Shown in pieces: positions 10,412 to 48,069 of a stretch of 64,000 nucleotides of DNA. The notes below the pieces were generated by a model. It made no database searches. It was given only the letters and a program-made list of their open reading frames with translations, and was not told the DNA's origin. The position numbers and the translations under genes are program-made. The stretch covers positions 1-64,000 of the forward strand of contig CDRNVI010000143.1 in the NCBI GenBank assembly GCA_977017575.1, given 5' to 3'. The stretch is from Paramoeba atlantica (Eukaryota > Protista > Discosea). The first letter of the stretch is position 1, and every line of letters begins with the position of its first letter.

Positions 10412-10418
10412 GTTTCAA

Positions 10419-11981: not shown

Positions 11982-12016
<35 letters not shown>

Positions 12017-12239
12017 CTCAAATAATATCAAGAAAAATTCCCTCTTCTTTTACATCACTCACACAAGTTCAATCCTTACTTACACTCCTTGAAATCTATT
12101 CACTCTGTTCATTCAAATCAGAAAGAAAAAAAGAAAAAGAAAGGAGAAAAGAAAAGAGAAAAGAGAAAAGAGATAAAAAAAAGAAAGAGAAAGAAAGAGA
12201 AAAAAGAAGAAAGAGAAAGAAAAAGACCAATATGGACAG

Positions 12240-18741: not shown

Positions 18742-18779
18742 CTGAGAGAACAAAAAAGAAGAAGAAGAAGAAAAGAACA

Positions 18780-22356: not shown

Positions 22357-25300
22357 TCATTCAAAATCTTCAAAATCTTCAAAATCATCAAAATCATCAA
22401 AATCATCATTCTCTGTTGTTGTATCATCATCATCATCATCATCATCATCACTCTTTGATGAGGAGATCTCATCGTCATCAACCAGAAGGAGGAGAGAAGA
22501 TGAAGAAAGAGGAGAGTGGTTAGGATTTCTTTGGGTGGTCTTGTTCTTTTGTAAACAATGATGAGGGAATAAGTTGGTGTTGGTTTGTTGTTGTTGTTGT
22601 TGTGATTTTTTAAAGTGAAAATTTTGTTGTGGTTCATGTGGTTCAACATAAATAAAAGAAGGAGGAGGAGAATCCTTCTCCTCCTCCTCCTTTTTTTTTA
22701 AAGGATTTTGTTTCTTCTTTCTCTTTGGTTGTGATGAAGATGAAGATGGTGGTTGCTGATTGGCAATCCTCATTGAGGAGAGGTGGTGAGTTGGTAGTGG
22801 TGGTAGTAGGAGTGAGGAGGATTGTTGCTCGGAAGAATAAGAAGAAGAAGAAGAAGAAGGAATGATGTTTTGTTGTGAAGTACAAAGAGGAGGTCGAGGA
22901 GGTCGAGGAGGTCGAGGAGGTTGAGGAGGTTGAGGAGGTCGAGGAGGATATTGGAGCTGGTGTTGTCGTTGTGGCAATAATTGTCTGACTCTTTTTGTTC
23001 TTAATTTTGTTGTTGTTTTCTTCTTCTTCTGTAGTTTCTCCCTTTCAAACTCTTTTCTCTTTGTCTGGGGCAAACAAAACCAAATTGCTTTTTCGAATAA
23101 TACGTTCCACCCCTCCCAATGTTCTTCTTCTTCTTTTGCACTATTATCTTTATCCCAGCAGCTGCTTCGCAAAAGGTATTGCACAAAGTTTTTCCATGTA
23201 GGAAATTCATTGTCATCTCTTCGAAAAAAACTTTCCCCACTAATGAGAGCCCACAATAAATCATAATAGAGTTCCTCTTTTGTGAAAAAAGCTTTTGTTT
23301 GTCCTCCATTTGGTCTTCTTGCGCAATATTTAGAGAAGTTTTTTGAATGATGAAAGATGTTCAAATGATCAATAAAGTATTTTACAATCTTTTGAACTTG
23401 TGTCATTTCAAAAATTCGAAGTTGGAGTGAGGGTGAAAGGTCAGCTGGCCCAATATCAACACTCAAGAGAAGTTCTTTTTGGAACAAAGAAGCAGAAGAA
23501 TCAGAAGAACCAGGAGGAAAACAAGAAGAAGAAGAAGAAGAAGACTGAGGAGAAGAAGAATGCTGAAAAGAAGAACACTGAGAAGAAGGACTGAAACAAT
23601 CAGAAGTCAGAGAACAAGAAGAATCAAAAGAAGAATCAGAAGAATCAGAAGAATTAGAAGAATAATCAGCAGAAGAACAAGAAGAAGAATGAGAAGAAAA
23701 AGAAGAATGAGAAGAAGAAGAAGAAGAACGAGAAGAAGAAGAAGAACAAGAAGAAGAAGAAGAACAAGAAGAAGAAAAAGAATGAGAAGAAGAAGAAGAA
23801 CAAGAAGAATCAGAAGAACAAGGATATCCTTGTGAAGAACCAAGTCGTTGAGAAGAACCAAGTCGTTGAGAAGAACAAGAAGAAGAACCAAGTTGAGAAG
23901 AACCAAGTTGTTGAGAATTACTTTTTGCAAAAGAACCTTCTTTTTCTTCTTCTAAATGCTCAACATCCAATTGTTGTTGTTGGAGATGTAACACAAAATG
24001 GGATATCAAATGTGCATCAGAAAAAAGAAGAAAAAATTCTTTCTTTTTTTGAAAAAAAGATAAGAAACGAGAAAATTGTTGAGGAAGACAAGAAGAAGTT
24101 GATGAAGAAGTCAAAAAAGACTTTTCAATCAAAGAGAGAAGAGCATCATGATGTTCTTGAGAAGGTGGTCTTTGACAAAGACCAAAAGAAGAGGTCTCTT
24201 CACAAAAAACACAAGAATATACTGTGTGATGAGAAGGAGGAGGATCCTTCTTGGAGAGGTCACCATTATCACTACACCCATCACCACACCCATCACCACA
24301 CCCATCATCACCACCATCACCTTTTTTTTTCATCTGTTGGAGCTGTTGTGATGAAAAAAAAGGTTCAAAAAACTCCTTCTTAAATCCAACAAATTCCTCC
24401 TCTCCACCAATCCAAAGTGGAAGAGAGCTACTTCCAAATCCTTTCCCACTTCTTTTCATACGAGTCAGTTGGCCTCCCAAAAATTTGTGACAGTATCCAA
24501 AACTGTTAATCAAATCTCGGTAAAGAGCTTGTTGATCCGTGGACAAAGGTTTTGTATCTCGCCCAAAAAAAAGTCCTCCAAAATTAAATTCTTGTGTTGG
24601 GGCCCAATGAGAAAGAAAGAGAAGATCTCGCAAATGCTGAATATAAATCTTTTGCGGGATACAAAAGATTTGATCATGATTACGAATAAAGTCAATCATC
24701 TGAAGAGAAGAAGAAGAAGAAGGAGAAGGTGGTCGAAGAGAAAGTGCCTCAAAAAGACTTTGTAGTTTTAATAATTGATTTCTTTTAATAAAAGACAAAC
24801 TTTCATTAAAACTCACACCAAAAATTCGAATTTCAATCCGTACCCCACCTAGACAACCATCACCATCACCACCTCCGCCCTCCCCTCCTCTCCTCCTACC
24901 ATTAACAATCTTTTCAAATTTAAAGAGTAATTTCTGAAAAGATTTTTCCCGTTGGCGCAGTGCTCCAACTGTCTTTGGCATTTCACTCCACCGAATTTTC
25001 GAGAAATTGGTCAAAAAATGGAGAATTGGTGAATAAATCTTCACCATTGCCCATTTCTCACCCAACAAAAGAAATGGTTTCATTCGAGACCCAAAGGTCA
25101 AAGTTCCAATTGGACACTCCTCTTTGAGAATTTCTTTGAAAAAAAGAAATCCTTTAGTTGTACCACTGCCAACATCACCTTTTTCTCCTCCTTCACCTTC
25201 TCTCCCTTCTCCTCCCCCAACAAGAGGAGGAGCTTCTTCTTCTTCTTCTTGTTCCTCTTCATCATACTTATTGTCATTATCCTTCTTCTCACTTCTTCTT

Positions 25301-28300
25301 CTCTTCCTCACTATCCTCTTCTTTGAGTCAGAGAAGAAAAAAGAAGTTTGGAATGAAGAAAAAATCCCAAAGGATCCAAAAAACCGAAATAATGGAAAAA
25401 AGTTTACAATTGGAATTGGGGGGGGAGGAGGAACAACCACTGTCGCACCAAGGTTTGGGTTTGCTGTTGAAAAAGAGGAGGAGGAAGAAGAAGAAGAAGA
25501 AAGAGAGAGAGAAGATGAGGAAGACAAGCCAGAGGAGGAGGAGGAAGTTTTTTGGGGGAAAAAAGAAGAAGAGATAAGTTTTGGAGAAAAGAGAATAATC
25601 TCTTTCATTGGAATTGTTGTTGAAAAGTCAAAACAACAACAATGTCTCAATTCTTGAGATGATGATGAAAAAGAGATATTTTCTCTATCTTGTAAGGAAC
25701 CAGGAGGTGGTGGGGGAGGGGAATTCGAGAAGGAGGAGGAGAAGGGAGAAGAATGAGAAGAATGAGAAGAAGAGTTTGAACAATGTGACTGCTGCTGCTG
25801 CTGTTGAGGCAAACGAGAAGAACAAGAATAAGAAGAACAAGAAAAAAAAGAACGACTTAAGGCAGAGGAGGAGGAGGAGGGAGACTGTTGCTGCTGCTGC
25901 TGCTGATGTTGCTGAGCATTTGGATCCAAAGTATTCGAACGAGAAGAAATTTGTTGTTGTTGTTGTGGTCCAACAAAAATCTTTGAAGGAGAGGATGATA
26001 CACTCTGATCAGAGAGAAGTGTGGTATCACAAAAAGAAAATTTTCTTAAAAAAGAAAATAAGTCAGCGAATTGTTGTGTTTTTTCACAGTGGTCTGACCA
26101 CTCCTGATCAACAATAGGAGGATCATCAGCATCATCATCACTCCAAAAAGTATGTTTTCCACCGTAACTTCCCACTCGAATATGAGAGACATCACATAAC
26201 TGTAAGGCTTTCACAATCAATGAAATCGAAAAATTTTGTGTTTTCCGGATCACACACTTTCGAGGAGAAGATTTTGGAGGAGGAGAAGATTTTTTCGAGG
26301 AAAAAGAAGAAGAGGAGACATCTTCACCATCTCCTTCTTCATCAAATCCAGGTTGAAGGTCGACTGAAAGGACTCCGTAAATATTCAAAAAGTGAACAAA
26401 AGCTGTCCGTTTTGGAAAAGATTGTTCAGTATCAGGAAACCAAAGAAAAACTGGTTGAATAGAGAGGATATTCACGAAGGGATAACGAAATAAAAGAGGA
26501 TCTTCAGGGAGAGAACACGAAAAAGAATCAGGTATCAAAAGAGTTGATGGCCCTCCAACAAATAAAGGAAGCTCAGAGACAGGCAGCCAAAAGGTGTAAA
26601 AATCTAAATCTACCAATCCATCCGCCCATATTGGCAGTTGAGGTAAATCCAGAATGGATTTACCATCACATTCACCATCACCATCACCATCACCATCACC
26701 ATCACCATCACCATCACCATCACCATCACCATCACCATTACCACCAAAAGACTGCTTTGAAGAAGGAAAGTATTCTTCTTCTTCTTTACTTTCTTCTTCT
26801 TCTTCCCCTTCCTCTTTTACTTCTTCAATTGTCCCTTCTTCTTCTTCTTTTTCTCCAAAAAAAGAAGTTACACAGTGGTAGTGGTGTGACTCTTCTTCCT
26901 CTTCTTCAGACAAAGACCGAATAGAATGATCATCACCATCACCATCACCATCACCATCGCCATCATCCATCTTTTTTGGTTCAAAAAAAATTACATCATC
27001 ATTGTCACTAAAAATTTAAAAAAAAACAATAAATTAGAAAAAAAACAAAATGAAAAAAAGAAAAGAAAAGAAAAAAACAATACTTAATAATAAAAAAAAT
27101 AAAGAAAAACAACACTTAATAAAAAAAATAGATATTTTAGTGTGAACCTGAAAGAAGAAAAAGAGAGTTGTGGAGACGAAACATTAAGTATATGATCTCT
27201 TTCTTCTGTTTTCTCCTCGTTATAACTACTCATCATGAAGAGTAGTGATTCTTCTGTAAAGAAAAAATAAGAAAAAATTTTCTTCATTGTGTTTTTGTTC
27301 ATTGAACCTTCCTCCCAACCCAAAACCCAAAGGAGAGAGAGAGAAGAGAGAGAGAGGGAGGGAGGTTGAAAGAAAGAAAATAAAATGAAACAGAGATGAG
27401 ATACCTTTTGTTTTGAGGGATGATGGCAGTGCTGATGAAAAGGGTGGGATAAGAGATAACCTCCTCTTTTCCTCTTCTTTTGTGTCCTCTCCTCTCATCC
27501 TGAAAGATGGAAGTGGTGATGGTGATAAAACATTCTTCTTTTTCTTAAATGATGATGATTTACAAGAAGAAAAAAACTTCTTTTTATCTCCTCTAGAAAA
27601 ATTAAGAAAAAAAAGGTATCATGTTGTTAGAACAAAAATATCTTAACATCATTTTTTTTTGTGACTTTAATTACTTTTTCTATATTTTTTTTTTAAAAAA
27701 AAAAAAAAAAAAAAAACAAAACTGTTGATCAGAAAAAGAAGAATGAGAAGAAGAAGAATGAGAAGAAAAAGAATAATAATCTTCATTATCATTCCTTTTC
27801 AAAGGGTTTTGGGTTCTGCTTTTTTTGTCAATCTTCTTCTTCTTCTTAGCCACCACCACCAGAGAGGGAGACTGAGAACCATGGGATTGAGAACCAAATT
27901 GTTGGGATAAAAATTGAGATGATGATTGAGACTTAGTTGGCTGAGATGTTGGCCACTTGAAAATTTCTTTCTCCTGAAACACTCCCCTAAACCCAAAATA
28001 ACATTAGATGAAAATAGTTGAATTTAATAAAAAGAAACAAAAAAATTTTAATTTAAAAAAGAACAACAAAGAAAAAATAAAAAAGACCACATCAACACAC
28101 AACACACAACACATAATACACAATCAATCAATCAATCTATCAATCAATCAATCAAAAAAAAATTGAAAACAAACATTCCAGCAGACAATGGAGAAGGCTG
28201 CCCCTTTTCTTGCAGAGAACATTGCAGCAAAGAGGATTGGTGAGAAGGGAAAGGAAAAGGGGAAGGAGGAGAAGGGGAAGGGGAAGGCTGCTGATGAGAT

Positions 28301-30070
28301 GGAGAAGGAGAAGGAGAAGGAGAAGGAGAAGGAGAAGGAGAAGGAGAAGGAGAAAGAGAAGGAGAAGGAGAAGGAGAAGGAGAAGGGGATGATGATAGAG
28401 AAGGGGGTGATGGAGAAGGAGAAGAAGAAGAAGGAGGAGGAGAATTAGAGATTTTTTTTCGGTGATTTATCTTCTTCTTTTTTGTTTTGAGAGATGGAGC
28501 AGGAGAAAGTTTCTTCTTCAGTTTTTCAACCCCTCCATCATCCACTAAATAAAATCAAAAAAAAAAAGGAATTGATAAAACTATTTTTCAATAATAAAGA
28601 AAAAGAGAAAAATCAAAAAGTGAACCAGTAGAACAATAATATTGTGGTAGACCATTATCAGTCACAAAGAAGGATCCAGCTTCATCTCTATTCTCACCAC
28701 AATTTTTCTGAATGTTCCTTTTTTTAGAATATCCATAAGGGGGAACCTTCCAAAATAGTATTCTTTGTTGATGATAAAAGAAGTTTTTTGAGTCTTCTGA
28801 AAGACTTTTTCTTCGACGATGACAATGATATCGAGATGGTTCAGATGATTGGCAGTGGATTTGTTGTCTTTCTTGGGGGGGGGGGGGGAGAGCATCCAAA
28901 TCAGCAACAACAGGATCACCAGCAAGAGCAACAGCAGCAGCAGCAGGAACAGCAACAGGAGCAATAGCAGCAGCAGCAATATTGCTGTTGCTGGAAAGAC
29001 TTCTCTTTCGATGAGTGGCACCAAGAGCAGCAACAGGATCACCAACAGCAGCAGCAGTAGCAGCAATAGCAGCAGGAGCAGCAACAGGATCACCAGCAGC
29101 AACAGCAGCAGGAGCCGGAGCAGAAGCAGCAACATTGCTGTTGCTGGAAAGACTTCTCTTTTGATGAGTGGTGCCAAGAGCAGCAACAGGAGCAGAAGCA
29201 GCAACATTGCTGTTGCCGGAAAGACTTCTCTTTCGATGAGTGGTGCCAGGAGCAGGAGCCGGAGCAGAAGCAGCAACATTGCTGTTGCTGGAAAGACTTC
29301 TCTTTCGATGAGTGGCACCAGGAGCAGGAGCCAGAGCAGAAGCAGCAACATTGCTGTTGCTGGAAAGACTTCTCTTTTGATGAGTGGCGCCAAGAGCAGC
29401 AACAGGAGCAGAAGCAGCAACATTGCTGTTGCCGGAAAGACCTCTCTTTCGATGAGTGGCACCAGGAGCAGCAGCAGGAGCAGAAGCAGCAACATTGCTG
29501 TTGCCAGAAAGACTTCTCTTTCGATGAGTGGTGCCAGGAGCAGCAACAGGAGCAGAAGCAGCAACATTGCTGTTGCCGGAAAGACTTCTCTTTTGATGAG
29601 TGGCGCCAGGAGCAGAAGCCGGAGCAGAAGCAGCAACATTGCTGTTGCTGGAAAGACCTTTCTTTCGATGAGTGGCACCAGGAGCAGCAGCAGGAGCAGA
29701 AGCAGCAACATTGCTGTTGCTGGAAAGACTTCTCTTTTGATGAGTGGCACCAGGAGCAGCAACAGGAGCAGAAGCAGCAACATTGCTGTTGCCAGAAAGA
29801 CCTCTCTTTCGATGAGTGGCACCAGGAGCAGCAACAGGAGCAGAAGCAGCAACATTGCTGTTGCTGGAAAGACTTCTCTTTTGATGAGTGGCACCAGAAG
29901 CAGCAACAGCAGCAGCAGCAGCAGCATTATTACAAGAAACACTTTTTTTTTTGCCTAAAGAAAGGGTTATCAGAAGAAAAAAAAAGGAAAAAGGGGGTAG
30001 TTAAGAGAGGAGAGAGAAAAGAAAGGGTTTAAAGTCAGATTTAAAAAAACCAACCTTGATAGTTCAACAT
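22357..30070 (-). CDS. Very large multi-exon protein (~2,300 aa) of unknown function; low-complexity tracts separate globular blocks
   Basis: Hand-built GT-AG model with all phases consistent: (30070-30055 tentative start), 29954-28626, 28544-28175, 27986-27723, 27592-27405, 27253-27148, 27007-22357. It joins track ORFs 28588, 28144, 27680, 27226, 27084 and the 1537-aa ORF. Globular motifs include VKIYSPILHF, GGVRIEIRI, LYRDLINSFGY and CVFC. Confidence 0.8.
28975..29915 (-). repeat. Coding minisatellite, about 12 units of 72 bp (24 aa: ASAPVAAPGATHRKRSLSSNSNVA)
   Basis: AACATTGCTGTTGC recurs at 72-bp spacing over most of the array. The Ala/Pro minus frame is continuous with ORF 28588-28899 and bounded by splice sites. 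Confidence 0.9.
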
Positions 30071-30703
30071 ATTCAGAACCAAAAAAAAACTGAAATAAGA
30101 GCGCAGGGGGAGAGTGGTACAAAAAATACTAAAACGAAAGGATAAAATCGTTTCTCTAAAGAAAGAGTAAAAAAAAAAAAAAAAAGAAAATGTTCTTTTC
30201 TTTTTCGCCCAACAAAAAATAAAAAAAAATGAGTTTTTTTGTTGTGCAAGTGAAAACTCAAGAATAAAAAAAATCACAATCCCAAGGGAATACAACAATT
30301 CAGACTATTTAAAAAAAAAACTATTTGAAAATTCATACCTCTTTTATTTTGTGACATAAAAAAGTTCTTTTTGAATTCAAAAAAGTTCACAGAAATTTCA
30401 TTTGTAGAGTGAGCGAGTGAGTGTGACACCACATAAATCAAAAACTCTCTGAAAAAATCACTAAAACCAAAAATTAAAAAAAGATCCTTTTCACTATCAA
30501 AATGAGTTAAAATAAATCAAACCAAAAAGGAATCATCCCTTCCAAAGCGTGTGGTGTGTGTTTTTGTGTTCTCTATTCTCTCTATTCTCTTTGCTTCCTT
30601 ATTTTTCCTTCCATCCTACATTCTTTTCATTTGGTTTCCTTTTCTTTTTTTTCATTATTTTTGATTCTTTGTAATAACATATTTTTGTTTCATTACGACA
30701 AGT

Positions 30704-30750
30704 ATGATGAAACAAGCGAAGATTGATTTTCAATCGAACCATCAACAACC

Positions 30751-30781
<31 letters not shown>

Positions 30782-33700
30782 CCACAACAATCGCAACTCC
30801 AACTACAACCACAACAACAACAACAATCGCAACTACAGAATCCACAACAGGGGGATTCTGTTTCCCTCTCTCAACAAGATGCAGCAACACCAACAATCCG
30901 AACAATGACAGAAATAATTCAAGAACAAAATATTGAAAAAAAAGTCGAATACCTCAAAACATTTTGGACAATTCCATCAAGAGGATCTGCAACACAAAAC
31001 AAAGAAACCCTTCCAACACATCTCCAAGAACTTGAAAATGAATCCATGATTGAGATATTAGCAAGTCAATATTATGATGATCCGGTAATTATGGTTGATT
31101 ATGGTTGTTGATTGTTATGGTTGTTGTGTGGTTGTATGTAATTGTGGTTGTTGTGGTTGTAGTTGTGGTTGTTGTTTGTTGTTTGGTTGTTGTTGTTTTT
31201 TGTTTGGGGAAGGGAAAAAAAGAGCACCAGAGGTTTGTTTGTTTGTTTTTTTGGCGAGGAAATCTTCTTTTCAGCAAAAAAAAATTCGCGAATTTTTTTG
31301 TTTTTTGTTTTGTTTTTTGTTTGTTTTTTGTTTTTTGTTTTTTGTTTTTTCTGTCAGCAGTTTGAGAAAAGAAAGAAGAAAATTTCTTCAGAAAGAATGA
31401 AATGAAGAGAATATTATTATAACTCTTTCAGTATTTTTTTTATTTATCTTTTTTTTCTTTTCAAAAACAAACACTTAGGAAGTGAATTCACGATGCATAA
31501 GCTCTGAAAAGGAACAAAATGCATTGAAACAATCACTTTCTCAAAGCGGATGGAATTTGGGTTTGCTTGGTCTTTTTTGTTTTGCTAAAAAAATGAATTG
31601 TGATGGAAACAAAGAAATTCGAGTGACAAATGAAAATCTTGTAATGTTTTCTGCAATTGATGGACGACACCGTTGTCTCGTTTTGAAGGTATTTTTCTTT
31701 TTTTTTTCAATGTTCTTTCAAGAGTGCAAGAAAGGGGAGTGTTTCTTGTTGGGGGGGGGGTGTTGTTGTGATTTGGTTTTTTTTGTGTTGTGGGTTTTGG
31801 GTTTTGGGTTTGTGTTTATGGATATATTTTTATAGGAGTGGAATTCCATACTTTCAACAACATGCTTTTTTTTTGTTTTGTTTTGTGTGTTGTGTTGTAG
31901 AAGGATAAAATAATACAACACCAATAATGCACAACAACAACCTTTAAAAACCCCATTAATTACCCTATCCCCACCTGGTTATTGACCCCCCTTTTTTTTC
32001 TCTAAATTCTCTGATTTATAGAATTTGAGTTTTACTCATAATGATGTTTTGGGTTCAGAAACAACACCCTTCTTTCCTCTTTCTGCTTCCTCCTCCTTAT
32101 CATTTCTTACTTCTTCTTCTCTTTCTTCTTTTTCTTTTTCTCCTTCTTCTTCTTCTTCTTCTTCTTCTTCTTCTTCTTCTTCTTCTTCTTCTTCTTCTTC
32201 TTCATTGTACAAGAAGTTTCGAACCATTTGCCGAGGGAGATGGTGGTCTTTTACGAACTTTAATTCTGAACCACAACAAAAACTATTTTTTCTTTTTGAA
32301 GGGATTGCTTCAACAAACCGAAATGTTTTTGTTCAATGGACATTATTGGATTTTGTTCGTGCAATTCGAAAAATTCGACAAAATTTTGAAAGGGCTGATT
32401 TTGAAGAAGAAGAAGAAGAAAAGGGAGGAGGAGATAGCAGAGGAGATGATAGCAATAAGGCTGGTGAGTTGAAAGACAGTGAGGAGAAGGCTGAGGAGAA
32501 GACTGAGGAGGAGAAGAAGACTGAGGAGGAGGAGGAGGAAGGAGGGAAGAGGAGAAAAACAAAGAAAAAAAAAAAGAAAAAAAAGAAAAAAAAGAAAATG
32601 ACAGAAAATTTTTTAAAAAAACTTTTGCAGTTAGAACACACCTCATCAAAACAAACACTTCTTCGGATGGCTAATACAATTTTAAATTCTGCCGGAATGG
32701 AGTCTCAAATGATTCGATATTTAGTTCAGAGTGATTTGATTGTTGAAGAGAAAGGAGAAGGAGAAGGAGAAAGAGGAGAAGGAAAAGGAAGACGAGATTC
32801 AAAGGTTTTTTATTTTTTATTAATTTTAAAATATTTAAAGAATATCCTTATTTTTTTAATTTAAACCCCTCCCATAAAAAAGCCAACAACCCTCTTTTTT
32901 TCTTTTTTCTTTTTCTTTTCTTTCTTTATTGCAAATATTAATTTGAAGAAAAAACTCTTCTCTTCTCTCTCTTCTCTCTCTTCTCTTTTCTTCTTTCTTC
33001 TCTTATTTCTCTCTTTTCTCTTCCCTCTTTCTCTCATTTCTCTTTTTTCTCTCTTCTCTTCTCTTTTCTTCTCCCGGCGGGGTTCTCTTCTCCCGGGTTC
33101 TCTTCTCCCTGGTTCTCCTATCTATCTCTTCTTTCCTTTTCTTTTTTTTTTTAGAAAGTAGATTTTGTTTTAAATGTACTTGAATTTTGGAGAGTTCTTC
33201 ATTTGAGCACATATAAAGATATTTTTTATCGTGGCTTTTTTATGTGTGGACCTGTACAACAACAACAACACACCACCACCACCACCACCACCACCACCAC
33301 CACCACAATGTCTCCTTTTGTGGGTGTTGGTTCTCCTATCTCGTCTTCAGAGCATCCATCGTCATCATTGCCATCGCTATCATCCTCCTGTTTCTTTGCT
33401 CAAAACGATCAAAAGAGAACTGAATTTCTTCAATTTTGTGCTTCCAATCTAAAGCATGTGAGTTCAAAATCAAGTATTGGTTTATTTCATCAGAAATTTA
33501 AAGAAATTTTTATCCCAGAAGATGCTCAAAATTTCATTTTAACTGGCCCTCTTCCGATGAACATCATTAATCGAAACTGTCGAAAAGGTTTATCTTTTAT
33601 TTTTTTTCTTCTTTTTTTTTCTCTCTAATTAGAAAAGAACCACACAAAACATACAACACACAACACAACACAACACAACACAACACAACACAACACAACA

Positions 33701-34202
33701 CAACACAACACAACACAACACAACACAACACAACACAACTACAAAAAAAAAACCTGTGGCTGCTCTGTTGTGCTTTATTCATTTTTTAAGAAATAATTTT
33801 ATTAATTATTTTAAATAATTTTAATAGATACGAAACAACAACAACAACCTGCCAAAACTACTAATAGTATCATTGAGGGAGATGGTGGTGACAATGAGAT
33901 TATTGTTATTTCTGATGATGAAGTTTTTTCATTGTCACCAGTAATAATAAGTTGTTTGAAGAGTGGTGATGATAAGGAAGAAGAAGAGAAGGAAAGGGAA
34001 AGAGAAAGTGTTTCGGATGATAGTAAAGAAGAAAAGAGAGATGATAAAGAAGAAAAAGAAACTGCTGAGGAAAAGAAAAAAGAAAGAGAGAAGAAAAAGG
34101 GAGAAAGAGAACAACATACTACTGCCACCACAACATCATTATTATCATTTCTATACCAAAAAATAATCCACTTTTACCTTTTCAATATTTTATCACTACA
34201 AG

Positions 34203-34261
<59 letters not shown>

Positions 34262-35108: not shown

Positions 35109-35156
<48 letters not shown>

Positions 35157-36773: not shown

Positions 36774-37367
36774 AAAAGTTTTTGTTGGGAAGGGGGGGAG
36801 GGGTAGAAAGTTTAGTGTCTGGTGGTTTTTTTTTTTTTAACTTTGTTGTTTTTATCTCTTTCTCTCTTTAATTTTTTTGGTTGAAAAAAAAAATAAAAAT
36901 TAAAAAAAATTAAAAAAAAAAAATAAAAATAAAAAAAAATTAAAAAATTAAAAAATCAAAGATTTTTTCTTGTTTCTTGTTTCATCTTTTATTAAAGCCT
37001 TCTCCTCCTCCCTCCTTCCCTCCTCTCTCTATATGTCTAATTAGGGTTGTGCAAAAAATATAAGGTTGTTTGATGTCAACAACACTCGTTCAAAAACTTG
37101 ATTGATTCCACACTAATTTAGATGGATCAAAAATCGAGTCATGGTATTGAGTTAAAAAACTGCCCGCCTCAACAACACACTAATATCACACTCCTTATGA
37201 CTGCGTATTTTTGTGTGAAACACCCTGAACAGTCTGTCAATAAAATTAGAGATATAATCACCCTAATCGGATAAGAATAATTATTATGCCTTGCTCATCC
37301 TCATGCTATCCCAAATTAAGAAAATCAAAAAAGAACCTTTTTTGAGCCCTTTTATCCAGAAGAAATG

Positions 37368-37369
<2 letters not shown>

Positions 37370-37428
<59 letters not shown>
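37370..37428. repeat. (TTGA)n microsatellite
   Basis: Direct reading of the sequence. Confidence 0.9.
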
Positions 37429-37432
<4 letters not shown>

Positions 37433-40416
37433 GTCAAATTGTTGTTGTTGTCGCTTCAGGTTTTCAACCAAAGAATCGCTTCTCTTTTGGTTAAACCATC
37501 AAAACCACCACCACCACCACCACCACCACCACCACCACTCGCCAGAACACCAACACAACCCCTTACTACACATCAATTCCCATCATCTCAAATAAAGGAA
37601 GAAGACACTGGAGCATATTGTTTTGTTGTCTTATCCGATTGCCCAACCTTCGAAAATACTGTTTCATCTGAAGATTGTCCCATTGAAAGATCCCAATTTC
37701 CTCCTTTTGTTCGAATTCAATAAATATCTCTTCAACATTGAAACTGAAAGTTCACCCAAAACCCCAAATATGCTTTTCCTTCAAAAAGAACTGAAATCAA
37801 AACCTCGCAGTAATGTACTTTTATAAGGTGATGAATTTAACCAAGGTTCAATAATTCCACCACCACCACCACCAAACAACAACCCGCCATGATCCTTATT
37901 CTTACTATCGCCATCACAACAACTCCTACTGCTGTTTCTGTTGCCCGCCATTGCTGCTGCCACCACCACCACCACCATCATTTCGATCATGGTGATGAGA
38001 AAAAAAAAGGCATCATCTCATTGAAGTTCAAAAAAGGTTTGAGGAATGAAGGAATACAAGAACCAACAGCTGAATTATCGAGAGCCCCGAAGCCGTTTCC
38101 GTCGAGATGATTGACTTTCCTTTAATGAATAATCTGTAATCCCACCACCACCACCCATTCTCAACAGAATTTGTTGTTCTCAACATATAAGGTAAAAACA
38201 TGTCTTTTTCGCTCGGATTCATATTCAACATCAAACGAAGAGAGGAGACAGAGATGTTTCCTTCTCTCCTTCCTCCAGCAGCAGCAGCAGCAGCAGAGGA
38301 GTACTAGCAGCAGCTTTCTCCTCCTCCGTTTCCGTCGTTGTTGTTGTGTGTTGTTGTTGTTGTTGTTGATGAGTTGTCAACGTTGTGTTGTTCTTTGTGG
38401 TTGTCTCAAGAAGAGAAGATGTTCAAAAAAATTCAAAAAAAACCTTTTCGAAAAAAGGTTATCATTGTCCTCTCTCTCGCACCACACCCTTAGTCTTTCC
38501 ATGTGTACCTCTAAAAAAAGAAAACAAGAAAACAAGAAAAAACAAAAATGTTTTTCTTCTTTTCAAAAAAAAATAAATTAATTTTTCACAATAAAAAGAA
38601 TTCTTTGAAACAAAAAAAGAAAAAACCTTTTTTTGAGCTTAAACCCTCTCTCCTCAATATGTTATTCAAACATCAGAAGAAGAGAGAGAAAGAAACACAA
38701 CTTTTGAACCCCCCTCTCTCTCTCCGCCCCCCTCCCTTCTTCTCTTGACTTTCATTTGTTTTGAGACTCAAAATGAGAGAAAAGAAAAAATAAATTGAGT
38801 ATTCAACTTAATCTTTTCTTTTTTTTTCTCTTTGTTATATTCAACTCTGCTGTTATATTATCGTTGTTGCCTCTTCCTTTAAAAAAAGAAAGAAAGAAAA
38901 AGTAATGTTGAATTAGTGTTTTGAAGGATAAAATGAAAAAAATATTATCTTGTTGTTTTAAATTAAAAAAAAAAAAAAAGAAAACAAAAAACCTTCTTGA
39001 AACCTCTTTCTCTTTCTTTCTCTTCTCTTGAGTCTCTTTCGCTCTTCCCCCCCCCCCGAAACCCTAAATCTCTTTGGATGCCGTCGATTGATTCTCTTCA
39101 ATAAATCACTAATTACATAAGTTATTAAAAAATATCTCTCTTCTTTCATAATATCAAATTAGAACAAACCAGCAAAAAGAAACGATTTATCACTGCTGGA
39201 AAAGCTTGATGTTCGCTCTCTCAACAAACAATAACAACAACAACAACACATGCATCAATTTTGTGTGAGATGATCTTTCCTCATCTTTCTTTTCCCCCCC
39301 CTTTCTTTCGTGGTTTGCCATCATAACACATCTTCTCCCTCTCTTTCCCTCTCTTTCCCTCTTCATATACTCACAAGACCAAACATTGACAACACAACAA
39401 AAGGATCACTGGAACAACCCAAAACCCAAACCCTCTTTTCATTCCAAAAACAAAAACAAAAACAAAAAAAATCGGTGTCCCGAATTAAAAGACACCTTTT
39501 CAAATTGTTCATTTTTTTTTTATCAAAGAATATTTTTATTTGTTTCAAAAATAAATATCTTGTTCAAAAGAAACCCAAAAGAAACCCAAACACCCAACAA
39601 GATAAAATATGTGTTCATCAAACAATAGAAATCAAGAAGAGAAAATCCTCAAAGTCAAGCGTACAGTATAATATGACCACGAAATTCATGCGATTTTTGA
39701 GCGGAGTCCACAATTAAGCAGCACCTCTCACAAGAATTCCTTTTTCACAACTCAACTTGAAGTTTTTGAATAACAATTGTTTTTGTTTGAATAAACAAAC
39801 AAATAAACAAAAAATCAAAAACTGTAAGCTTTCATTGAATATTCACTTTGGGTTAAAATTCATTACAGGGTAGTATTCTGTTGCCTGCCATTGACTTTTC
39901 CAGAAACAAAAAGTCTGAAAAGGTGAAGAAAGACTTTCTGCAACGCGGAGTTTTTTCGAGTTGATGAAAGAAATGAAAGACAAACAAATATTTTTTTTCA
40001 CAGCCCTGATTTAATTAGCCCCCATTCTTGCCAGTTCTGTGACATCATTTTCGGGGAATGAGAAAACAGGAATGGGGTGCATTTGTTTTCACTAGCTTGA
40101 AGAGATGGATCATATCCCTTTCAAAGCTCTTTAAAAAAAAAGCTTCTGTGCTAATCTTTTGGAGCTCTTTTTCAAACCCAAAATTCGAAACACTTTTTCG
40201 ACAACGGCGACAAAAAAATCGAACAAAAAATCTGGGGGGTTTCATTTGAGAAGAATTGGAGAGGAGTTTACGCGCGGAAAAGGAACGATTTTTGGCTCGG
40301 GGTTGTTCTTTTCTCTGGAAACCACAGGCCTGAACATTTCTAGGAGAGGTTGGAAGCGCTTTAGATCCACGGGGTGGACTGAAGTTGTGGAAAACTTATC
40401 CTAAAAAGTAAGGAGG

Positions 40417-41487
40417 ATGGAAAGAGAAAAAAAAAACCCTTCCCCCCCCCCAAACAAACGAAGAAAGCTTTTGGAAGAACTCCCTAATGAAAAGCTCCTC
40501 TGCCCAAAACCTGGCAACACAAGAGGCCAAGGACTGAGCGACGAACCGCAACGTGACCTTCCGGCAACCTCAAAGGAATCGATCTCACCAAATGTCTCTG
40601 ACAACACGAACCCCCCCCCCAAGAACGAAGAGAAAAAAAAGAACAAGAAATCGAGGTTTTGCATGGATAGAATTCCATTGACCTTAACCAAGAACCAGAT
40701 GCTTACCTGTGGGTCAGGAAAAAGGATAGATAAAAACACTTTTTTGGATGTAAACTGCGAGGGAAAGTCTTGCAGGGCACACTTTTTCAAGAAGTTCTTT
40801 TCGGAGGACGAAATGCTTCGTTTGAAAGATCGACTTCTTCAGTGCCCAAAACAATACTGGGAAAGAAAAACAGATAAGAGGGGGACAAGAAGATTTCTTT
40901 ATTCTGGCCACTGGAAGCATCGGTTTTACAACCTAGCCTTTGGGGCTGGAAAGGCTGGAAAATTGGAGCTCGAAAACCCGTTTTTGAAAAACATTTTGGT
41001 CGAGTTGGGGAAGAAGGTCTCTCGTGAAGCTTTGTCTCTGAAGAGGCCTGACGTTTATCTTCCCATTCAAGAAGCTGGCTTCGAAGAACAAGACTTTGGG
41101 ATGTTCCATTTGTTTATGTGTCCTGCCGGTCGATCTTTTATGCATACAGATGATAACAATTTTGTTTCTTGTATCTTCTCCATCAGTCTTGGGTCTGGAG
41201 ATGGGGACGGGCTTCATATGGGGGGATGCGGAGTGGACTTCAATTTGCGAGTGGGAGATCTTGTGATTGCAGACACCGATATTTTTTTTCACGGTTCTCC
41301 AAGCTACCAAGGAAATGAACACCCCAAAATTATTTCGGAAAATGACAGACTGGTGGGTCTCTTTATTCTCCATCGAAAGTTTATGATCATGAAGGGGGTT
41401 CCAGCTGATGATTTGGAGAGAGAACCCTATGAATTTCGAACCATTCCAAACCAAAACCAGAAAAAGAAGAAGGAAGTTGATATTTAA
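40417..41487 (+). CDS. TET/JBP-family 2-oxoglutarate/Fe(II) dioxygenase (intact, intronless, 356 aa)
   Basis: H243-T-D245 (FMHTDDNN), a jelly-roll segment GLHMGGCGVDFNLRVGDLVIAD, H292 (FFHGS) and R311 (DRLVGLFILH) match the HxD...H...R arrangement of TET/JBP enzymes such as Naegleria Tet. An upstream DKRGTRRFLYSGHW motif and an N-terminal NLS-like PPNKRRK are also present. Confidence 0.82.
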   Translation: MEREKKNPSPPPNKRRKLLEELPNEKLLCPKPGNTRGQGLSDEPQRDLPATSKESISPNVSDNTNPPPKNEEKKKNKKSRFCMDRIPLTLTKNQMLTCGSGKRIDKNTFLDVNCEGKSCRAHFFKKFFSEDEMLRLKDRLLQCPKQYWERKTDKRGTRRFLYSGHWKHRFYNLAFGAGKAGKLELENPFLKNILVELGKKVSREALSLKRPDVYLPIQEAGFEEQDFGMFHLFMCPAGRSFMHTDDNNFVSCIFSISLGSGDGDGLHMGGCGVDFNLRVGDLVIADTDIFFHGSPSYQGNEHPKIISENDRLVGLFILHRKFMIMKGVPADDLEREPYEFRTIPNQNQKKKKEVDI

Positions 41488-41720
41488 TAATTAAATTGTT
41501 TATTTTTTTTGTCATTAGCACTCAGTTGAGTCCTCTCTACGAAAATTTTTTCCCCCTTTCTCCACTCTTTTTTCTGAAAAACCAGTTTGATCTTTTGTAA
41601 ATATTATTCTTTTGCCAAAGGGTGTTCAGAATAAAAGGAGGAGGAGGGGAGAGGAGGGTGTAGACACAATAATAAAAATAGATTGCTCACAAAGGAAATT
41701 TGAGAAAACTTTTTGATTTA

Positions 41721-44700
41721 TCAACCTTTTGTTCCGCCCAACTTGGTTCTTTTTTTAGGAAGTGGTTTCTTGGTTTGTTTTTTTCTTTTGTTGCTCTGAG
41801 GGAAAGGCAAAAGTTCATTATCATAACAACAACAGGGTTCCATTTCATCTGAAGGATTCTCCCAAAAACTATGAGCATACAGGTAATAAAAAAGATGACG
41901 TCGAAAACCTTCACAATCGTCCAAGGTAAAATCCAATCCAAAGTTTTTGATCAGACAAAATCCGACAAAACAAACCATGACTCCACACTCTGTCATGTTC
42001 TTGGGGGGGGGGGGGTGAGGTGAGGTGGTGATCAAAGGGGGTTGTGTCAGAAAATATTAAAAACCAAAAAGATTAAACAACAAAAAAAAGGCAAGTTTTT
42101 TAACCTGACCCTGCTGTGGGGTTGTTGGTGAGCTATGAATAAATTCTGGGGGTTGTTCTTCTGGGGGTATTTCCTCTTAAAATCATTTAACAACAATACC
42201 TAAAAGATGAGAAGGGTAAAAAAAAAAAAAACTTAAGCTGAAAAGAAAGAAACAAAAAAATGAAAGAGAAAAGAACTGAAAGGTTCTTCGAATAAAAGGA
42301 ATTTTTGTGGTAGAGACTGTCATAACAATCAAGAACGACCCTTCTTTTCTGTTCACAAATATACCCTACAAGAAGGATCCAATGATTCTGGCTTACAAGA
42401 CAAGGCAGGTAAAACGTTTTATAATCCCAGATAACCACTTTCTATAAATTCAAAACAATTATTGGCAAGAAGATAGATATGGGGGAAAATTGAAAAACAA
42501 AAGAAAATAAAAAAAACTTACTTCCAAATAAGTTTGAGTTTGTTTTTGATACTGTTGTGTGTCATCTAACATAAAGGTGGGAAGTTCAACCAGTTCATCC
42601 TTCAGAGCATTTCCCTTTAGGAGAACTTGAAAGTAGAGACTGACTATCTGATAAAAAAAAGAAAAAGATAATCAGCAAAAGAGGGGGAGGGCTTGAGTGA
42701 AAAGGAAATTCAATAAAAGAAATATTTTCCTTTTGAACCTGTTCACTCAGTGGACTTGTTAAAATACTCTTAAAATCACTCGGGGAAATGGGGTATCCAC
42801 CGCTGAGGGTGGATACCCCAAAATAGAACTGTGTCTGCATTCCATAAGATTCCAAGTTTCTTTTTGGAATTTCAAGTTGTTTTTCAGTTGGAATAAATCT
42901 TTTCCAACGCTGTAGCTCGTGATCTTTAAAAATTAAAGTTTCAACTAATTGCTTGATATGCATTAACTCCTTCCTTCCTTTCTTTTCTAATGTAGTATTA
43001 TGTGGATCAGCCTTGAAACAAAGAAGAAAATAAAGTCAATTTTAAGAGAAAAACAAAAGTATGATGAACCAAACCAAACCCCCATTTCTTGAAAAACATC
43101 CTCTTTTGATGCCTTTAATTGAGATATCATCCCTTCATTATGAGTATGGCAAGAGGCACTCGGATATATTGAAATCTTGGAAGGGTATCCTTTTCCTTCC
43201 TTTTGATTCTCCCATTTTGCTGTCTCTGCATGTGTACTGGGTATAAAAGAGGGAGAGAATGAGGAGGAGGAGGAGGAGGAGGAGGATGAGAGAGAAGGAG
43301 AAAGAGAGAGAGAAGATGAATGAGAAGAAAAAGAAGAATGAGAAGAACGAAAATTTGAAGGAGAATGAGAAATAGAAGGAAAAGAAGGAAAAGAAGGAGA
43401 AGGGGACAATGAGGGAGCTGAAGGAAACAGAGAAGGAGGAGAAGAAAATGGAGAAGAAGAGAAAGAAGGAGAACAAAGAGAACTGAGAGGGGAAGAAAAA
43501 GAAAGAGAAGGGGAGAATGAGGGAGAAGGAGAAGGAGAAAATGGAGAAGGAGAAGAAGAAAATGGCGAAGAAGAAGAAGAAAATGGCAAAGAAGGAGAAG
43601 GAGAAAATGGAGAAGACAGAGAAGAAGGAGGAGAAGAAGAGAAAGAAGGAGACTGAAGAGAAAAAGAAAGAGAAGACAACTGATGAAAAGAAGGCAATAG
43701 GGGAGATGAGGAAAACAGAGAAGGAGAAGAAGAAGAAGGAAAACTTGCAAAAGGAGAAAGAACTGGCGAGTGTGAAAAACAGGGACTTGGAGAGAAAGAA
43801 GGAGGATGAGAATGAACTGGGAAAGGAATAAAAGAAGATGGAAAATTACTCATTTTTGGGGTTGATGATGGGGGAAAAAGAGTTGTGGAAGATTGGGAAA
43901 GAGAAAAGGGAGGGGAAGAAATGTGGATTGGAGGGGATGTGGTTTGGAAAGAAGGAGATGGAGAAGGAAAAGAAGAATGTGAACTTCCTGAGAGATGAGT
44001 GGAAGGAGAGAAATTACTTTGGGATGGGAGTGGAAAGGAAGAATGGGAAAAAGGAAATTGAGAGTTTTTTCCTGGTGATTGAGAAAGAGAAGAAGGGGAA
44101 GGGGAAGGGGAAGGGGAAGGGGAAGGGGAAGGGGAAGGGGAAGGGGAAGGGGAAGGGGAAGGGGAAGGGGAAGGGGAAGGGGAAGAGAGGTTAATTGGAG
44201 TGGTTTGGGAAGACATGTAGTGTGATGAAGGGTTGAGAGAGCGGGTGTTGTGACGATGAGAAGAGGATTGATAATTTGTTATTGGATCCAAAGTATCCTG
44301 AAGGGGCTGGCTACACAAAGAAGCATACTGATAAGCTGATTTGCAGGCAACAGAATTAGGTAGTTTTGTTCTTTTGAGGAGGGGGGGTTGCTTTGAAGAA
44401 CCAGAGGGAACAAGTTTTGAGGAGTGACCCTGATTTTGGTAGAAGGAAAGAATTATTAGAAATCTGCTTTTGAGTTTTCATATTTTATTTTTAAAAAAAA
44501 CAATTTGAAATTTTCAGAAAACAACAAATTTGGGGGAAAAAAGGGTCAACAAAAAATACCTCACGAATAAGTCGAGAAGGTTCATTTGCACTTATTTTGC
44601 TTGCTCTGTTTTCAAGTTTTTTCTCTGATCTCAATGCCTCACTTCGCTCCATCATCCCTTTGATCAAGGCATTCATTTGGATTGAAAAAGTTCCTTTCTC

Positions 44701-47700
44701 TTGACTGCTCACTCCTTGCCTACGTCTACCTCCAAATGGCTTTTGGGCCCAACAATGAGAACGAGCTGCAAGAATGGCTCCTTCAATTGCAAATCCTGCT
44801 CTTCGTGGAAGAGGGTATCTGTGTTGTGTATGTCAGAGGGGAGTGACTTTATTCTGTGTTGCAGAAAAACTGAAAATCAAAAAAGAAGAATGGATATTAT
44901 GAACCATCATTTTTAAAATTTTTCAACACCACAAAAATAATAAAGAAAAAACAAACCTCAATAACTCCCAATGAAGGTGATCATGGAGGGTATGTAAATA
45001 AGGAGCCCAATAAAGAGGGGAGAAATTACATTCGTTATATTTTCTTCCCCAAAGAAGGGAAGCCTTTCGGACAATATTGATCTCCTGGTGAGAGAGTTGA
45101 TATGGGGCTGAAGCCATTTGGAGAATGTCATAAGTCAACGTTAGAAACTCATATTCTGGTTCAAATGTGTTTCGTTCTGAATCTTCAATTAAAACATCGA
45201 TGATCGATAAATCAAAATCTGAATAACAAAAATCATGAAAAAACTTTTGAAATTTTTTTTTCTTAATAAAATTATTTGATCAAAAAAAGAGAGTTTTTGT
45301 TTGTTTGGAAAAAACAAGAAATAGTAAATCAACCTTTTGCATTCAACAAAGCTGCATTAAACGTCGAAAAAGGAAGGACTTCTGGTTCCTCTTGTTCATG
45401 TGAAATGCTTTTGACTTTTTCACTTTGGAGATTTGAATCCATCCATTCAGCTAATTTAATAAGATATTCATCATAAAGAAAATCAACAGCTCCTTTTCGG
45501 GCTAAAATAAATGATTTTTTTTGAAAACAAAAATATATTGTCAGTTGCAGAAAAATAAAGAGAGAGAATGTAATAATTAAGATATTCAAAAAAAAAAAAA
45601 AAGTATTTCAAAAAATATTATTCTTTTTTTATTATTCATAAAATTTTAAAAATAAAGAAGATATCAAAGAAAGAAGAGAAGAATAAACCAACCAGTTTTA
45701 TTGGGGAAACCCCTTAAAATCTTGATCCATTGAACGTAACTGGGTCTTACTTTTTTGATTCTCTCCCAAAGGTTGAATACCTTTTGTGATGGATCTGGAA
45801 TTTTCACTCCTCCAATGAAATAAAAAGCAATTCGAATCGTTAAATCATGAGGTGAATCTATTTTCTTTTTCAATGAGAATCTTATTCTTTTCAAAAGTAT
45901 TATTTTCAAAATATTCTTTTTTTAACTTACACGGAGAAACATCCATCACAAAAAGTTTAACAACATTTCTACAAGTCCCTTCAACAAAGTGGATCAAGTC
46001 CAAGTTGTGGTCCCATGGTTGCGATGGAGTGATTGGAGGATTTCTCATTCCCATTTGATTCATAAATTTTGCAAGACTGTTCTTGGATCCCTCCCAGCCC
46101 TGAACCAATTGAAAATCGCTTTTTTTTTGTTCTAAAGTCCACCATGTATGTTTTTGATCCAAGTTACCAACAAGATTAATTGCCAGTTCATCATCAGCCT
46201 CAGCAAAACTTTCAAAGATACTATAACCACCAAATTGATTATCCCAAAAGTGATGCTGACAAAAAAATATGGGCGGGGGGGTGGATGTTAGTAAAAACAA
46301 AATTATTTTTTTTAGTTGAAATTATTTTTTTTTTCTTAATTATTTTTGAAATTTTTCTTCTTTTATTTTCTTATTCATTTTTATGGAGTAAATTATTTTA
46401 ATAATTTTTTGGAAGAAGCTGCAAACCTTTGTATGATCATCCCAAAGCCCTCCATCATCCTTATCTCGAACAATGTTACAACGCCAACAAGGCCTTTTTG
46501 ATGTGTGATGAAACATTGATTTGCCACCATGACCAAAAAGAAGTGAAGAGCATAACATGTCATGTGTTTCAGTGAATGAAATTGTTCGTTCCTTGAAATC
46601 TGAACACTGAATCTTTTTCTAATAAAAATCACAAAAGAGCGCCAAGAGAAGAAAGAGAGAGGAGAGAGGGGAAAGAAAAAGTAGGTAAAAAAGAGAGGAA
46701 AATTAATGAAATTAATATCAAACGAAAAATTAAATTAATTTTTTTTAAAAAAAAAATTAAAAAAGTCAAAAATTAAATTAAATTAATATTAATATTAATA
46801 TTAATATTAAATTAAAAGCATTACAAAAAAATACTTACCTGGTAAATCATCTGATAAATCGGAGATATCTCTTCTTGAAAGGTTTTAAAGCTCTCTTTCA
46901 TTACAAAGACACCCAAACTTAAATTGAGGACTGCTCTCCAAGTTCGAGTTCCTTTTGCCCACCACTCTTCATCACCACGTATCAATTTCACAACAACTCC
47001 TTTGTTCCTTCGATCAAAAGAACCCCCATCAGCAGAAAAGATCATCTTCAGCTTTAAATTTTCCTCTGCATTAGCAACACCACCAATAGTCGCTTCTTCT
47101 TGGTGATTCATGTTGTTGTTCACCCGATCATATTCATCCCAAAGAGAATACTTGTTGCCCTCCCAATCATCATCAAACATTCTATTCACTTCACCCTCAA
47201 CATCATTCACTCTCCAACCATGGTCTGTTTTTTCCAAGGGAATCTGATCTTTTAGTTTTTGGAACCAATACTTGAACTGACAATCTGAAAATTCCCAACC
47301 CAGTTCAGAATTAAGACCTCGAATCTGATACCTAGTGAGACCCAATCTTAGAAACAATCTTCCAAAAAACTCTGCCTTTTCCTGTTTTTTCATACACCGA
47401 TATTTTTTTGATACTTCTTGCGCATCATTTGGGAGTCCAAAAAAGTTTCTAATCTGTTGTTTCTGAGAAAAACCACTCCTCCCCCTCCTTGCATTTCCAT
47501 CATCCAACTGAAAGAGTTTCTCTAAGACTTCAACAATCTGAGAAGTGTTGCAATCACTTAAAAGCTGAGCCAAGAAAGAGGTTGGATTTTCAAAACCAAG
47601 TGATCCCACAGCTTCATTCACCCAGTTGGTTCGGAGGAATTTCTCATCTGAGGAACTATGGTGATGGCAAGGAGCAGTCACAGGAGGAGTAAAAGTGGCG

Positions 47701-47999
47701 GTGGTGGTGGTGGTGGTAAAGGTACTGTTGGAAGCAGCAATGGGGAGTGTGGTGGTGGTGGTGGTGGTGGAAAAAGAAGAGGTGGTACCACCTCTTCTTC
47801 TAGTCTAAAAAACAGAAATTATTTTTCTTGCAGTGTCATCACTTAACTTGACTTGAAGAATAAAAAGACTCTTCTCTTTGCAAAAAAAAAAGACCTGTTC
47901 CTGTTGTCCTTGTTGTGGAAAAACTTGAGGAATCACTCCCATACCCATCATACTCTCAGCAGTTTGATCAACAGCAGCAGCAGCTCTTTCTAATTCCAA
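41721..47999 (-). CDS. RAG1/Transib/Chapaev-like DDE transposase fused via a Ser/Pro linker to a C-terminal Ulp1/SENP (C48) protease, ~1,550-1,600 aa
   Basis: Exons: 47999?-47895, 47804-46839, 46618-46427, 46255-45931, 45857-45693, 45501-45334, 45218-44957, 44818-44560, 44429-43080, 43011-42739, 42647-42522, 42441-42277, ~42199-42105, 41999-41721. All are GT-AG and phase-consistent except one ambiguous junction. Transposase motifs: FSADGG (D at 47028-30), SLGVFVMKESFKTFQEEISPI, ETHDML (D at 46559-61), PCWRC, DLIHFVEG, APYLHTLHDHL, FAIEGA. Protease motifs: SEQIVSLYF, LPCLVSQNHWILLV, YDSL, PQQGQNMTECGV. Confidence 0.78.
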
Positions 48000-48069
48000 A
48001 CACCAAATTCTTTCAGAATAGCAACACTTTCAAACCCACCAAAAAGAAAAAAGACAAACAGAAACTTTA

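Follow-up and report, generated by a model that had tools for sequence, protein, structure and literature searches.

Transposons that carry a TET/JBP dioxygenase gene have been described in fungi, where they belong to the CMCT (CACTA/Mirage/Chapaev/Transib) clade, with EnSpm, ESTA and Plavaka as representatives, or to the KDZ (Kyakuja-Dileera-Zisupton) group, and escape from silencing has been proposed for them (Kojima 2025, PMC12730594). The fungal CMCT elements are cut-and-paste transposons. Their DDE transposase bears the motifs C(2)C and H(3-4)H, their termini are of the type CA(C)..(G)TG, and a TET/JBP gene lies between the terminal inverted repeats (TIRs). Such elements are so far documented only in fungi (PMC12730594 and work cited there), and our literature search for TET-carrying transposons outside fungi found no case. 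Ulp1-type cysteine proteases also occur on DNA transposons, namely on Zisupton/KDZ and on plant CACTA and MULE elements, and KDZ elements carry TET genes in addition. Here, we analyzed 64,000 nucleotides of contig CDRNVI010000143.1 of the amoeba Paramoeba atlantica (assembly GCA_977017575.1, positions 1 to 64,000 of the forward strand; subsequently designated the window). Window positions 39841–48084 in all probability represent a truncated copy of a ~9.5-kb multi-copy cut-and-paste DNA transposon, which carries a TET gene and a transposase-Ulp1 gene. It resembles the fungal CMCT elements in the features listed above, but differs from them in its amoeban host, in a transposase that matches no Pfam or other known family profile, in an apparent fusion of this transposase to an Ulp1 module and in the presence of two diverged Ulp1+TET cassettes on one backbone. 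A preliminary description of the locus knew of no precedent for its gene combination; this has to be qualified in view of the described fungal TET-carrying CMCT and KDZ transposons (PMC12730594).

The window has a G+C content of ~35% and its introns are short and of the GT-AG type. Its subtelomeric setting, proposed previously, is evident from ~140 units of the telomere repeat CCCTAAA at positions 1–985, which are followed by a CpG-depleted retroelement block (ratio of observed to expected CpG, CpG o/e, of 0.10 for window 1100–20000). Assembly ERZ24900291 (ENA) served as comparison DNA and an MMETSP transcriptome as source of transcripts, both being from the same organism. Locus L003 of this assembly (ctg4003l) is the window locus itself (99.8% identity), and the boundaries of the element were mapped by blastn comparison of the window with eight other loci. 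Copies of the element are present on at least 10 contigs of ERZ24900291 and are 94–99% identical. Clustering of the open reading frame (ORF) of transposase exon 2 at 90% identity yielded nine members on at least nine contigs, and five further relatives of this ORF are more diverged (54–80% identity) and partly decayed. K-mer depth in DNA runs was 3–8x higher over the transposase half of the element.

At the TET side, homology to the window stops at 39841–39844 in L001, L006 and L007. The terminus reads ...CCCAAAGTG in the orientation of the transposase gene and is followed by four unrelated flanks (window, L001, L006, L007), one of which, in L001, is a 7tm_3 receptor gene. On the forward strand of the window this TIR, CACTTTGGG, occupies positions 39841–39849 and is the sole terminus within the window. 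At the transposase side, all seven copies compared (L004–L010) cease to match the window at 48079–48084, whereas they match one another for 1.34 kb more. Their homology ends sharply at CACTTTGGGAC..., preceded by five unrelated flanks (L004, L005, L006, L008, L009), and in these five loci the end opens with the same 9-mer as the TET-side TIR. Hence, the full element measures ~9.4–9.6 kb (9412 bp in L006) and is bounded by perfect 9-bp inverted termini, 5'-CACTTTGGG...CCCAAAGTG-3'. The termini that the preliminary description could not locate are thereby defined, and they enclose only the TET and the transposase-Ulp1 genes. An additional search for further ends with a small ORF of the TET side returned only the known contig.

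Alignment of the copies also revealed one empty site, which is paralogous: the flank of the L005 insertion is present twice in L009 and runs uninterrupted across the insertion point. The right flank of the L005 insertion itself is absent from the assembly. L006 is the one copy of which both ends are assembled. A target site duplication (TSD) of 2–8 bp was sought there and none was found (..GCAGTT on one side, GAGAGA.. on the other), which counts against a transposon. The missing TSD, the subtelomeric position of the window locus and the location of most copies at contig ends would be compatible with the idea that the repeats spread by subtelomeric or segmental duplication rather than by transposition. 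However, duplication does not account for identical 9-bp inverted termini joined to five unrelated flanks on one side and four on the other, one flank is an internal receptor gene, and one copy has inserted into a repeat of which two uninterrupted versions exist elsewhere. We therefore consider spread by duplication extremely improbable and regard the repeats as a transposon family. The proposal that a cargo-carrying transposon resides at this locus is thus borne out: it is multi-copy, has shared TIRs and unrelated flanks and encloses TET and Ulp1 genes.

The extent originally assigned to it does not hold. According to the preliminary description, a single element of more than 25 kb (22357–47999) mobilizes four genes as a toolkit, i.e. 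a giant ORF, a ParB/methyltransferase-like gene, the TET gene and the transposase-Ulp1 gene. These four genes are indeed adjacent in the window. However, homology with every other copy ends at the sharp TIR at 39841–39844, beyond which the flanks differ (the receptor gene in L001, other sequence in L006 and L007), and window 22357–39840 had no blastn match in any of the eight other loci. Likewise, the sequences that flank the TET side of L001, L006 and L007 showed no similarity to the ParB-like gene. The shared boundaries give an element of ~9.5 kb, of which 8.2 kb lie in the window. Comparison of gene order among copies gave a divided result: the TET and transposase-Ulp1 genes are linked elsewhere, but neither the giant ORF nor the ParB-like gene accompanies them there. 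Since nothing of 22357–39840 occurs near other copies, the latter two genes are neighbors and not cargo, and a single element of more than 25 kb has next to no likelihood.

The window copy of the element (39841–48084, 8.24 kb, transposase on the minus strand), as delimited by collinearity with the other loci, is incomplete. The absent 1.34 kb of the transposase-side end are replaced at the junction by an (AC)n/(GA)n microsatellite (48085–48130), as the comparison with L004–L010 revealed. Position 48084 was considered as a terminus and ruled out, since the other copies run 1.34 kb further. The absent segment carries the second TIR and the first coding exon of the transposase gene, which corresponds to 9308–9488 in L005. 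This exon splices in phase onto window exon 1. Its product is a Cys/His segment of zinc-finger-like character, for which homologous counterparts exist at the N-termini of related transposases. Because one TIR and the zinc-finger exon are gone, the window copy is defective (5'-truncated) and cannot be autonomous; its remaining reading frames are all open.

A dispersed repeat of 280 bp, which is unrelated to the element, lies near its transposase side at two loci, window 48571–48851 and L005:7245–7526. The two repeats are 85% identical and lie in opposite relative orientation.

The transposase-Ulp1 gene previously recognized here holds up as a reading frame. The coding region (41721–47951, minus strand; 1552 aa) comprises 14 predicted exons with GT-AG at all introns, consistent intron phases and no internal stop. 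Exons 1–7 are located at 47951–47895, 47804–46839, 46618–46427, 46255–45931, 45857–45711, 45501–45334 and 45218–44957, and exons 8–14 at 44818–44560, 44429–43080, 43011–42739, 42647–42522, 42441–42277, 42199–42110 and 41999–41721. In the predicted protein the transposase core is followed by a Ser/Pro-rich linker of ~450 aa, contained in exon 9, and by a C-terminal Ulp1-like module. The gene is convergent with the TET gene; the distance of 234 bp given before agrees with 233 bp from stop to stop. Transposase and protease-like module are thus apparently fused in one polypeptide. It weighs against this model that the reads matched to the locus were DNA contigs only and lacked splice joints, for which reason both splicing and fusion are read from the exon model.

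To which class does the transposase belong? In the model we recognized the motifs SADGGS with the first catalytic Asp (D1; residue 276), THDMLC with the second (D2; 359), PCWRC (384), LDLIHFVEG (490), LHTLHDHLH (693) and AIEGA (715), which contains the catalytic Glu. PCWRC is located 25 residues past D2, and LHTLHDHLH 22 residues ahead of the Glu. A full HMMER scan with exon 2 detected the distant homologues P0033–P0040 (27–36% identity), which align with the window exons over D1 (SADGG), D2 (HDM), the C(2)C motif (PCWRC) and DxxH. PCWRC and LHTLHDHLH are conserved in P0035, P0036, P0038 and at the loci L011 and L012, and the latter two also retain H(3-4)H and the catalytic Glu (AIEGA) in the next exons. 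The Lys of "MKES" had been considered as a stand-in for D708 of RAG1; this was wrong, as the homologue alignment puts D2 in "THDML". The termini are of the 5'-CA..TG-3' type in five copies at one end and four at the other; they begin with CACTTTG, followed after 2 bp by an A-rich run at one end only. Together, the motifs D, D, C(2)C, DxxH, H(3-4)H and E and the CA..TG termini place the transposase in the CMCT clade as defined in PMC12730594.

For comparison of folds, the paralogue P0036 was modelled as a proxy, and not the whole spliced transposase-Ulp1 protein. With the AlphaFold2 (AF2) model of P0036 as query, Foldseek ranks 1–29 were all RAG1 or HzTransib. VIA-align gave Z scores of 6.3–8.0 for 28 RAG1, Transib and BbRAGL entries vs 4.2 for the next unrelated chain; the match spans ~175 residues, corresponding to RAG1 459–715, and thus covers the RNase H-like core of RAG1 on the side of the paralogue model. 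These data support placement of the transposase in the CMCT clade with a predicted RAG1/Transib-like fold, the evidence for the fold coming from the paralogue model. Several results have to be set against this assignment. P0036 is a paralogue with only 27–29% identity, and its model, which is of low confidence (predicted local distance difference test score, pLDDT, of 56), does not include the C-terminal third of the core. A search of all PDB sequences with the family profile A2 (hmmsearch) yielded no RAG1 or Transib entry at E ≤ 10. In addition, Pfam found no transposase family on the transposase exons and their homologues, RAG1, KDZ and a Transposase_21-type core included; a word-indexed homology search with exon 2 returned only its own cluster; and exon 4 gave nothing with phmmer against PDB or in the Atlas search.

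RAG1, Transib and the RAG1-like protein of ProtoRAG provide the only solved structures that matched the paralogue model, and they share with our element the order D, D, C(2)C, H..H, E as well as termini starting with CAC. They differ from it in that no sequence-profile similarity was detectable and a RAG2-like partner is absent here, and their 5-bp TSD and 12/23 heptamer-nonamer organization have no demonstrated counterpart in the element. To our knowledge, no structure of a CACTA-type transposase has been solved, and the fold match therefore does not discriminate within the CMCT clade. Hence, membership of Transib itself is not supported. Of the RAG1/Transib-like core postulated initially, the fold, as judged from the P0036 model, and the motif set remain, but a link by sequence profile is missing and the core is inseparable from CACTA-type relatives.

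The linkage to a TET gene and the presence of an Ulp1 domain, reported as hallmarks of KDZ/Zisupton elements (in part PMC12730594), could alternatively indicate that the transposase belongs to KDZ and not to the CMCT clade. However, no Pfam KDZ match was obtained on any exon or on P0033–P0038, all structural matches were to RAG1, Transib and RAGL proteins, the motifs C(2)C and H(3-4)H are in line with the CMCT clade, as are termini of the type CAC..GTG, and no 8-bp TSD is seen in L006. Neither Pfam nor the fold search thus identifies the core as KDZ. Moreover, unlike in Zisupton/KDZ and in plant CACTA and MULE elements, the protease apparently forms the C-terminus of the transposase, behind the Ser/Pro-rich linker. 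We judge a KDZ origin to be very unlikely and retain the CMCT placement.

Two further families of the same transposase superfamily were encountered. The first (L011:10001–12844, ERZ24900291 ctg3980l), which encodes P0036 (25–29% identity), lies amid fragments of a Peptidase_S10 gene and exhibits conserved intron positions. The second (L012:1–14540, from ERZ25071330, another sample) consists of a ~6.4-kb unit in tandem and encodes a related transposase with 29–31% identity; this unit also has an ORF with a SAP domain and ORFs of 673–697 aa and 262–344 aa without family. By tblastn, neither TET nor Ulp1 was found in the L011 and L012 families, and the cargo is therefore specific to the family of the window element.

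The TET gene claimed in the preliminary description was substantiated. It is intronless, located at 40417–41487 on the plus strand, and its ORF of 356 aa is intact. In a Foldseek search with an AF2 model built from nine relatives, ranks 1–14 were occupied by CcTet, CMD1 and NgTet1 (E = 4e-7 to 3e-5), with CcTet (7vpn) as the top match (E = 3.9e-7). The language-model features (Atlas) of the protein matched Tet_JBP clusters (score 0.94). The residues H243-x-D245, H292 and R311 are present, of which H243, H292 and R311 are invariant in the alignment of nine relatives; R311 would presumably bind 2-oxoglutarate (2OG). The modelling thus confirms 40417–41487 as the gene of a predicted TET/JBP-fold 2OG-Fe(II) dioxygenase. 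With CcTet of Coprinopsis cinerea, NgTet1 and CMD1 it shares the fold and the iron-binding residues HxD...H, but identity to them amounts to only 9–12%. Speaking against the assignment, the confidence of the model is middling (pLDDT 64), and Pfam detected no family on the protein at E ≤ 0.1, Tet_JBP (PF12851) included. Its sequence relatives are few and all unannotated (7 clusters), and two metagenome scans for relatives with genomic context (with alignment A1 and with P0005) remained blank.

At least one copy of this TET gene is transcribed, as follows from an MMETSP transcript fragment: it agrees in 128/128 aa with the ctg4003l and ctg1555l copies and in 127/128 aa with the window. Residue 248 is N in the window and D in P0027 (the other assembly of the locus), in the ctg1555l copy and in the MMETSP transcript, which corresponds to a single G>A change that distinguishes either strains or assemblies. 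The TET ORF also exhibits the highest CpG o/e of the region (0.63). With an intact ORF, this CpG ratio and a transcript match, one may ask whether the window copy is an immobilized remnant, in which TET and perhaps transposase-Ulp1 were retained because they serve the host at the subtelomere; its frames are open despite the loss of one TIR and of the first exon. However, the window copy is 96–98% identical to mobile-looking copies, so that the open frames may simply reflect youth, and the transcript fits the ctg1555l copy equally well. Retention for a host role therefore appears unlikely, and we favor a truncated transposon copy.

A second TET paralogue, P0007 (44% identical), is present at L002:7141–11180 (ERZ24900291 ctg3775l) and adjoins an ORF of 594 aa of the piggyBac type (DDE_Tnp_1_7). 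Both are enclosed by inverted repeats of 96 nt, which are 92% complementary and 4.0 kb apart. A TTAA duplication is not evident at this locus, which may represent a TET-carrying piggyBac-like element; piggyBac is not among the TET-carrying superfamilies listed in PMC12730594.

The protease-like module is encoded by exons 10–14 (41721–43011, minus strand). It was assigned to Ulp1/CE-clan proteases on the basis of a sub-threshold match to Pfam Peptidase_C48, a profile match to RickCE and conservation in a second version of the cargo, cassette B (see below). In the model, NHW (residue 1393), YDSL (1413) and ECG (1462) provide the candidate catalytic residues. His (NHW), Asp (YDSL) and ECG occur in this order in both cassettes, with QQ ahead of the Cys motif (QQ...N..ECG), and in cassette A the stretch from QQP to N is longer by 3 residues. 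The scores themselves argue against a firm assignment: Peptidase_C48 (PF02902) reached E = 0.0046–0.0064 on a single exon (16.8–17.2 bits vs a cut-off of 20.7), Pfam found no match on the Ulp1 pieces of cassette B, and the match of the His-Asp segment profile to the CE-clan protease RickCE is weak (E = 0.56). The Pfam scores are lowered because the domain is split across exons. A Pfam scan that took in every exon-sized ORF of the four genes (transposase, TET, ParB-like and giant) yielded nothing beyond this sub-threshold Peptidase_C48 match.

Comparison of the copies revealed that the cargo half of the element exists in two versions. Type A is represented by the window, L007 and L001, and type B by L004, L006 and L010. 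At the DNA level the two types share 96–97% identity both in the transposase half and in the terminal ~320 bp on the TET side. Between these regions lie ~3.7 kb with the Ulp1 exons and TET (window 40158–43949 vs L004:13694–17526 and L006:6456–10056), which can be aligned between the types only as protein, with 35% identity for TET and 44–48% for the Ulp1 exons. The gene architecture is the same in both types, and the TET+Ulp1 module is kept in every copy reaching that far. As old cassettes with 35–48% protein identity sit on a near-identical backbone with near-identical termini, these alignments make it evident that old lineages have exchanged or recombined their cargo halves.

Next, we considered the substitutions that distinguish the copies. 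In eight copies compared over 2.9 kb (window 45233–48079), 159/213 differences from the majority base were C>T or G>A. Of the C/G positions within CpG, 32/42 were changed, vs 97/895 of those outside CpG (odds ratio 26, p = 3e-21). The CpG o/e of the element is 0.37 and thus lies between the values for the retroelement block and the TET ORF. Since the transition decay is CpG-specific, the classical signature of 5-methylcytosine (5mC) deamination, it points to CpG methylation of the element copies and other repeats and not to a generic or context-free process resembling repeat-induced point mutation. This footprint gives a rationale for a TET gene as cargo, and a role in escape from silencing is plausible by analogy.

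A working model can be outlined as follows. The transposase of an intact copy, with its N-terminal zinc finger and RAG1/Transib-like core, would bind the TIRs and would excise and reinsert the element, as suggested by family membership and the one paralogous empty site. The host would methylate CpGs in the element copies, for which the CpG-specific decay speaks. By analogy with the fungal TET-carrying transposons, the TET protein would oxidize 5mC on the element or nearby and thereby counter silencing. More speculatively, the Ulp1 module might desumoylate the transposase itself or else chromatin or silencing factors.

A more far-reaching reading, which we put forward only tentatively and regard as possible rather than probable, is that the elements constitute an undescribed non-fungal CMCT lineage, whose transposase and protease form one polypeptide and whose exchangeable Ulp1+TET cassettes act against silencing by erasing CpG methylation, that this arrangement was invented independently, and that a second TET was captured by a piggyBac-type element. 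If the amoeban family holds up, capture of a 5mC oxidase would be a strategy to which transposons have resorted repeatedly in different eukaryotic supergroups. As the element bears a strong CpG-methylation footprint, the idea of an arms race is directly testable. The transposase, divergent from its relatives of the RAG1/Transib fold and possibly fused to a protease, would provide a data point on diversification of this recombinase family.

For annotation of the locus, the results remove a spurious giant element and set apart two unrelated neighbor genes, both located outside the element. The first, described as a gene for ~2,300 aa of unknown nature, is represented in the ORF list by an orphan low-complexity ORF of 1537 aa (22357–26970, minus strand). 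It exists as a reading frame, but is without homologue or family: Pfam assigned no family, a word-indexed search detected no homologue and the Atlas search returned nothing. The second neighbor (30704–36773, plus strand) was proposed to encode a ParB domain. Pfam found neither a ParB nor a methyltransferase match on its ORF pieces, but motifs consistent with the proposal are present, and by these motifs we designate it a candidate ParB/Srx-like gene with a beta-class methyltransferase-like part. DGRHR (at 31659) is followed by DPPF (31984), corresponding to methyltransferase motif IV, and by FVGVG (33317), which resembles motif I. This order is the one expected of a fusion of ParB with a beta-class N6A/N4C methyltransferase, and proteins of this kind have been described in ParB-Tls loci of phages as well as in some chlorophytes and chytrids (PMC4738411).

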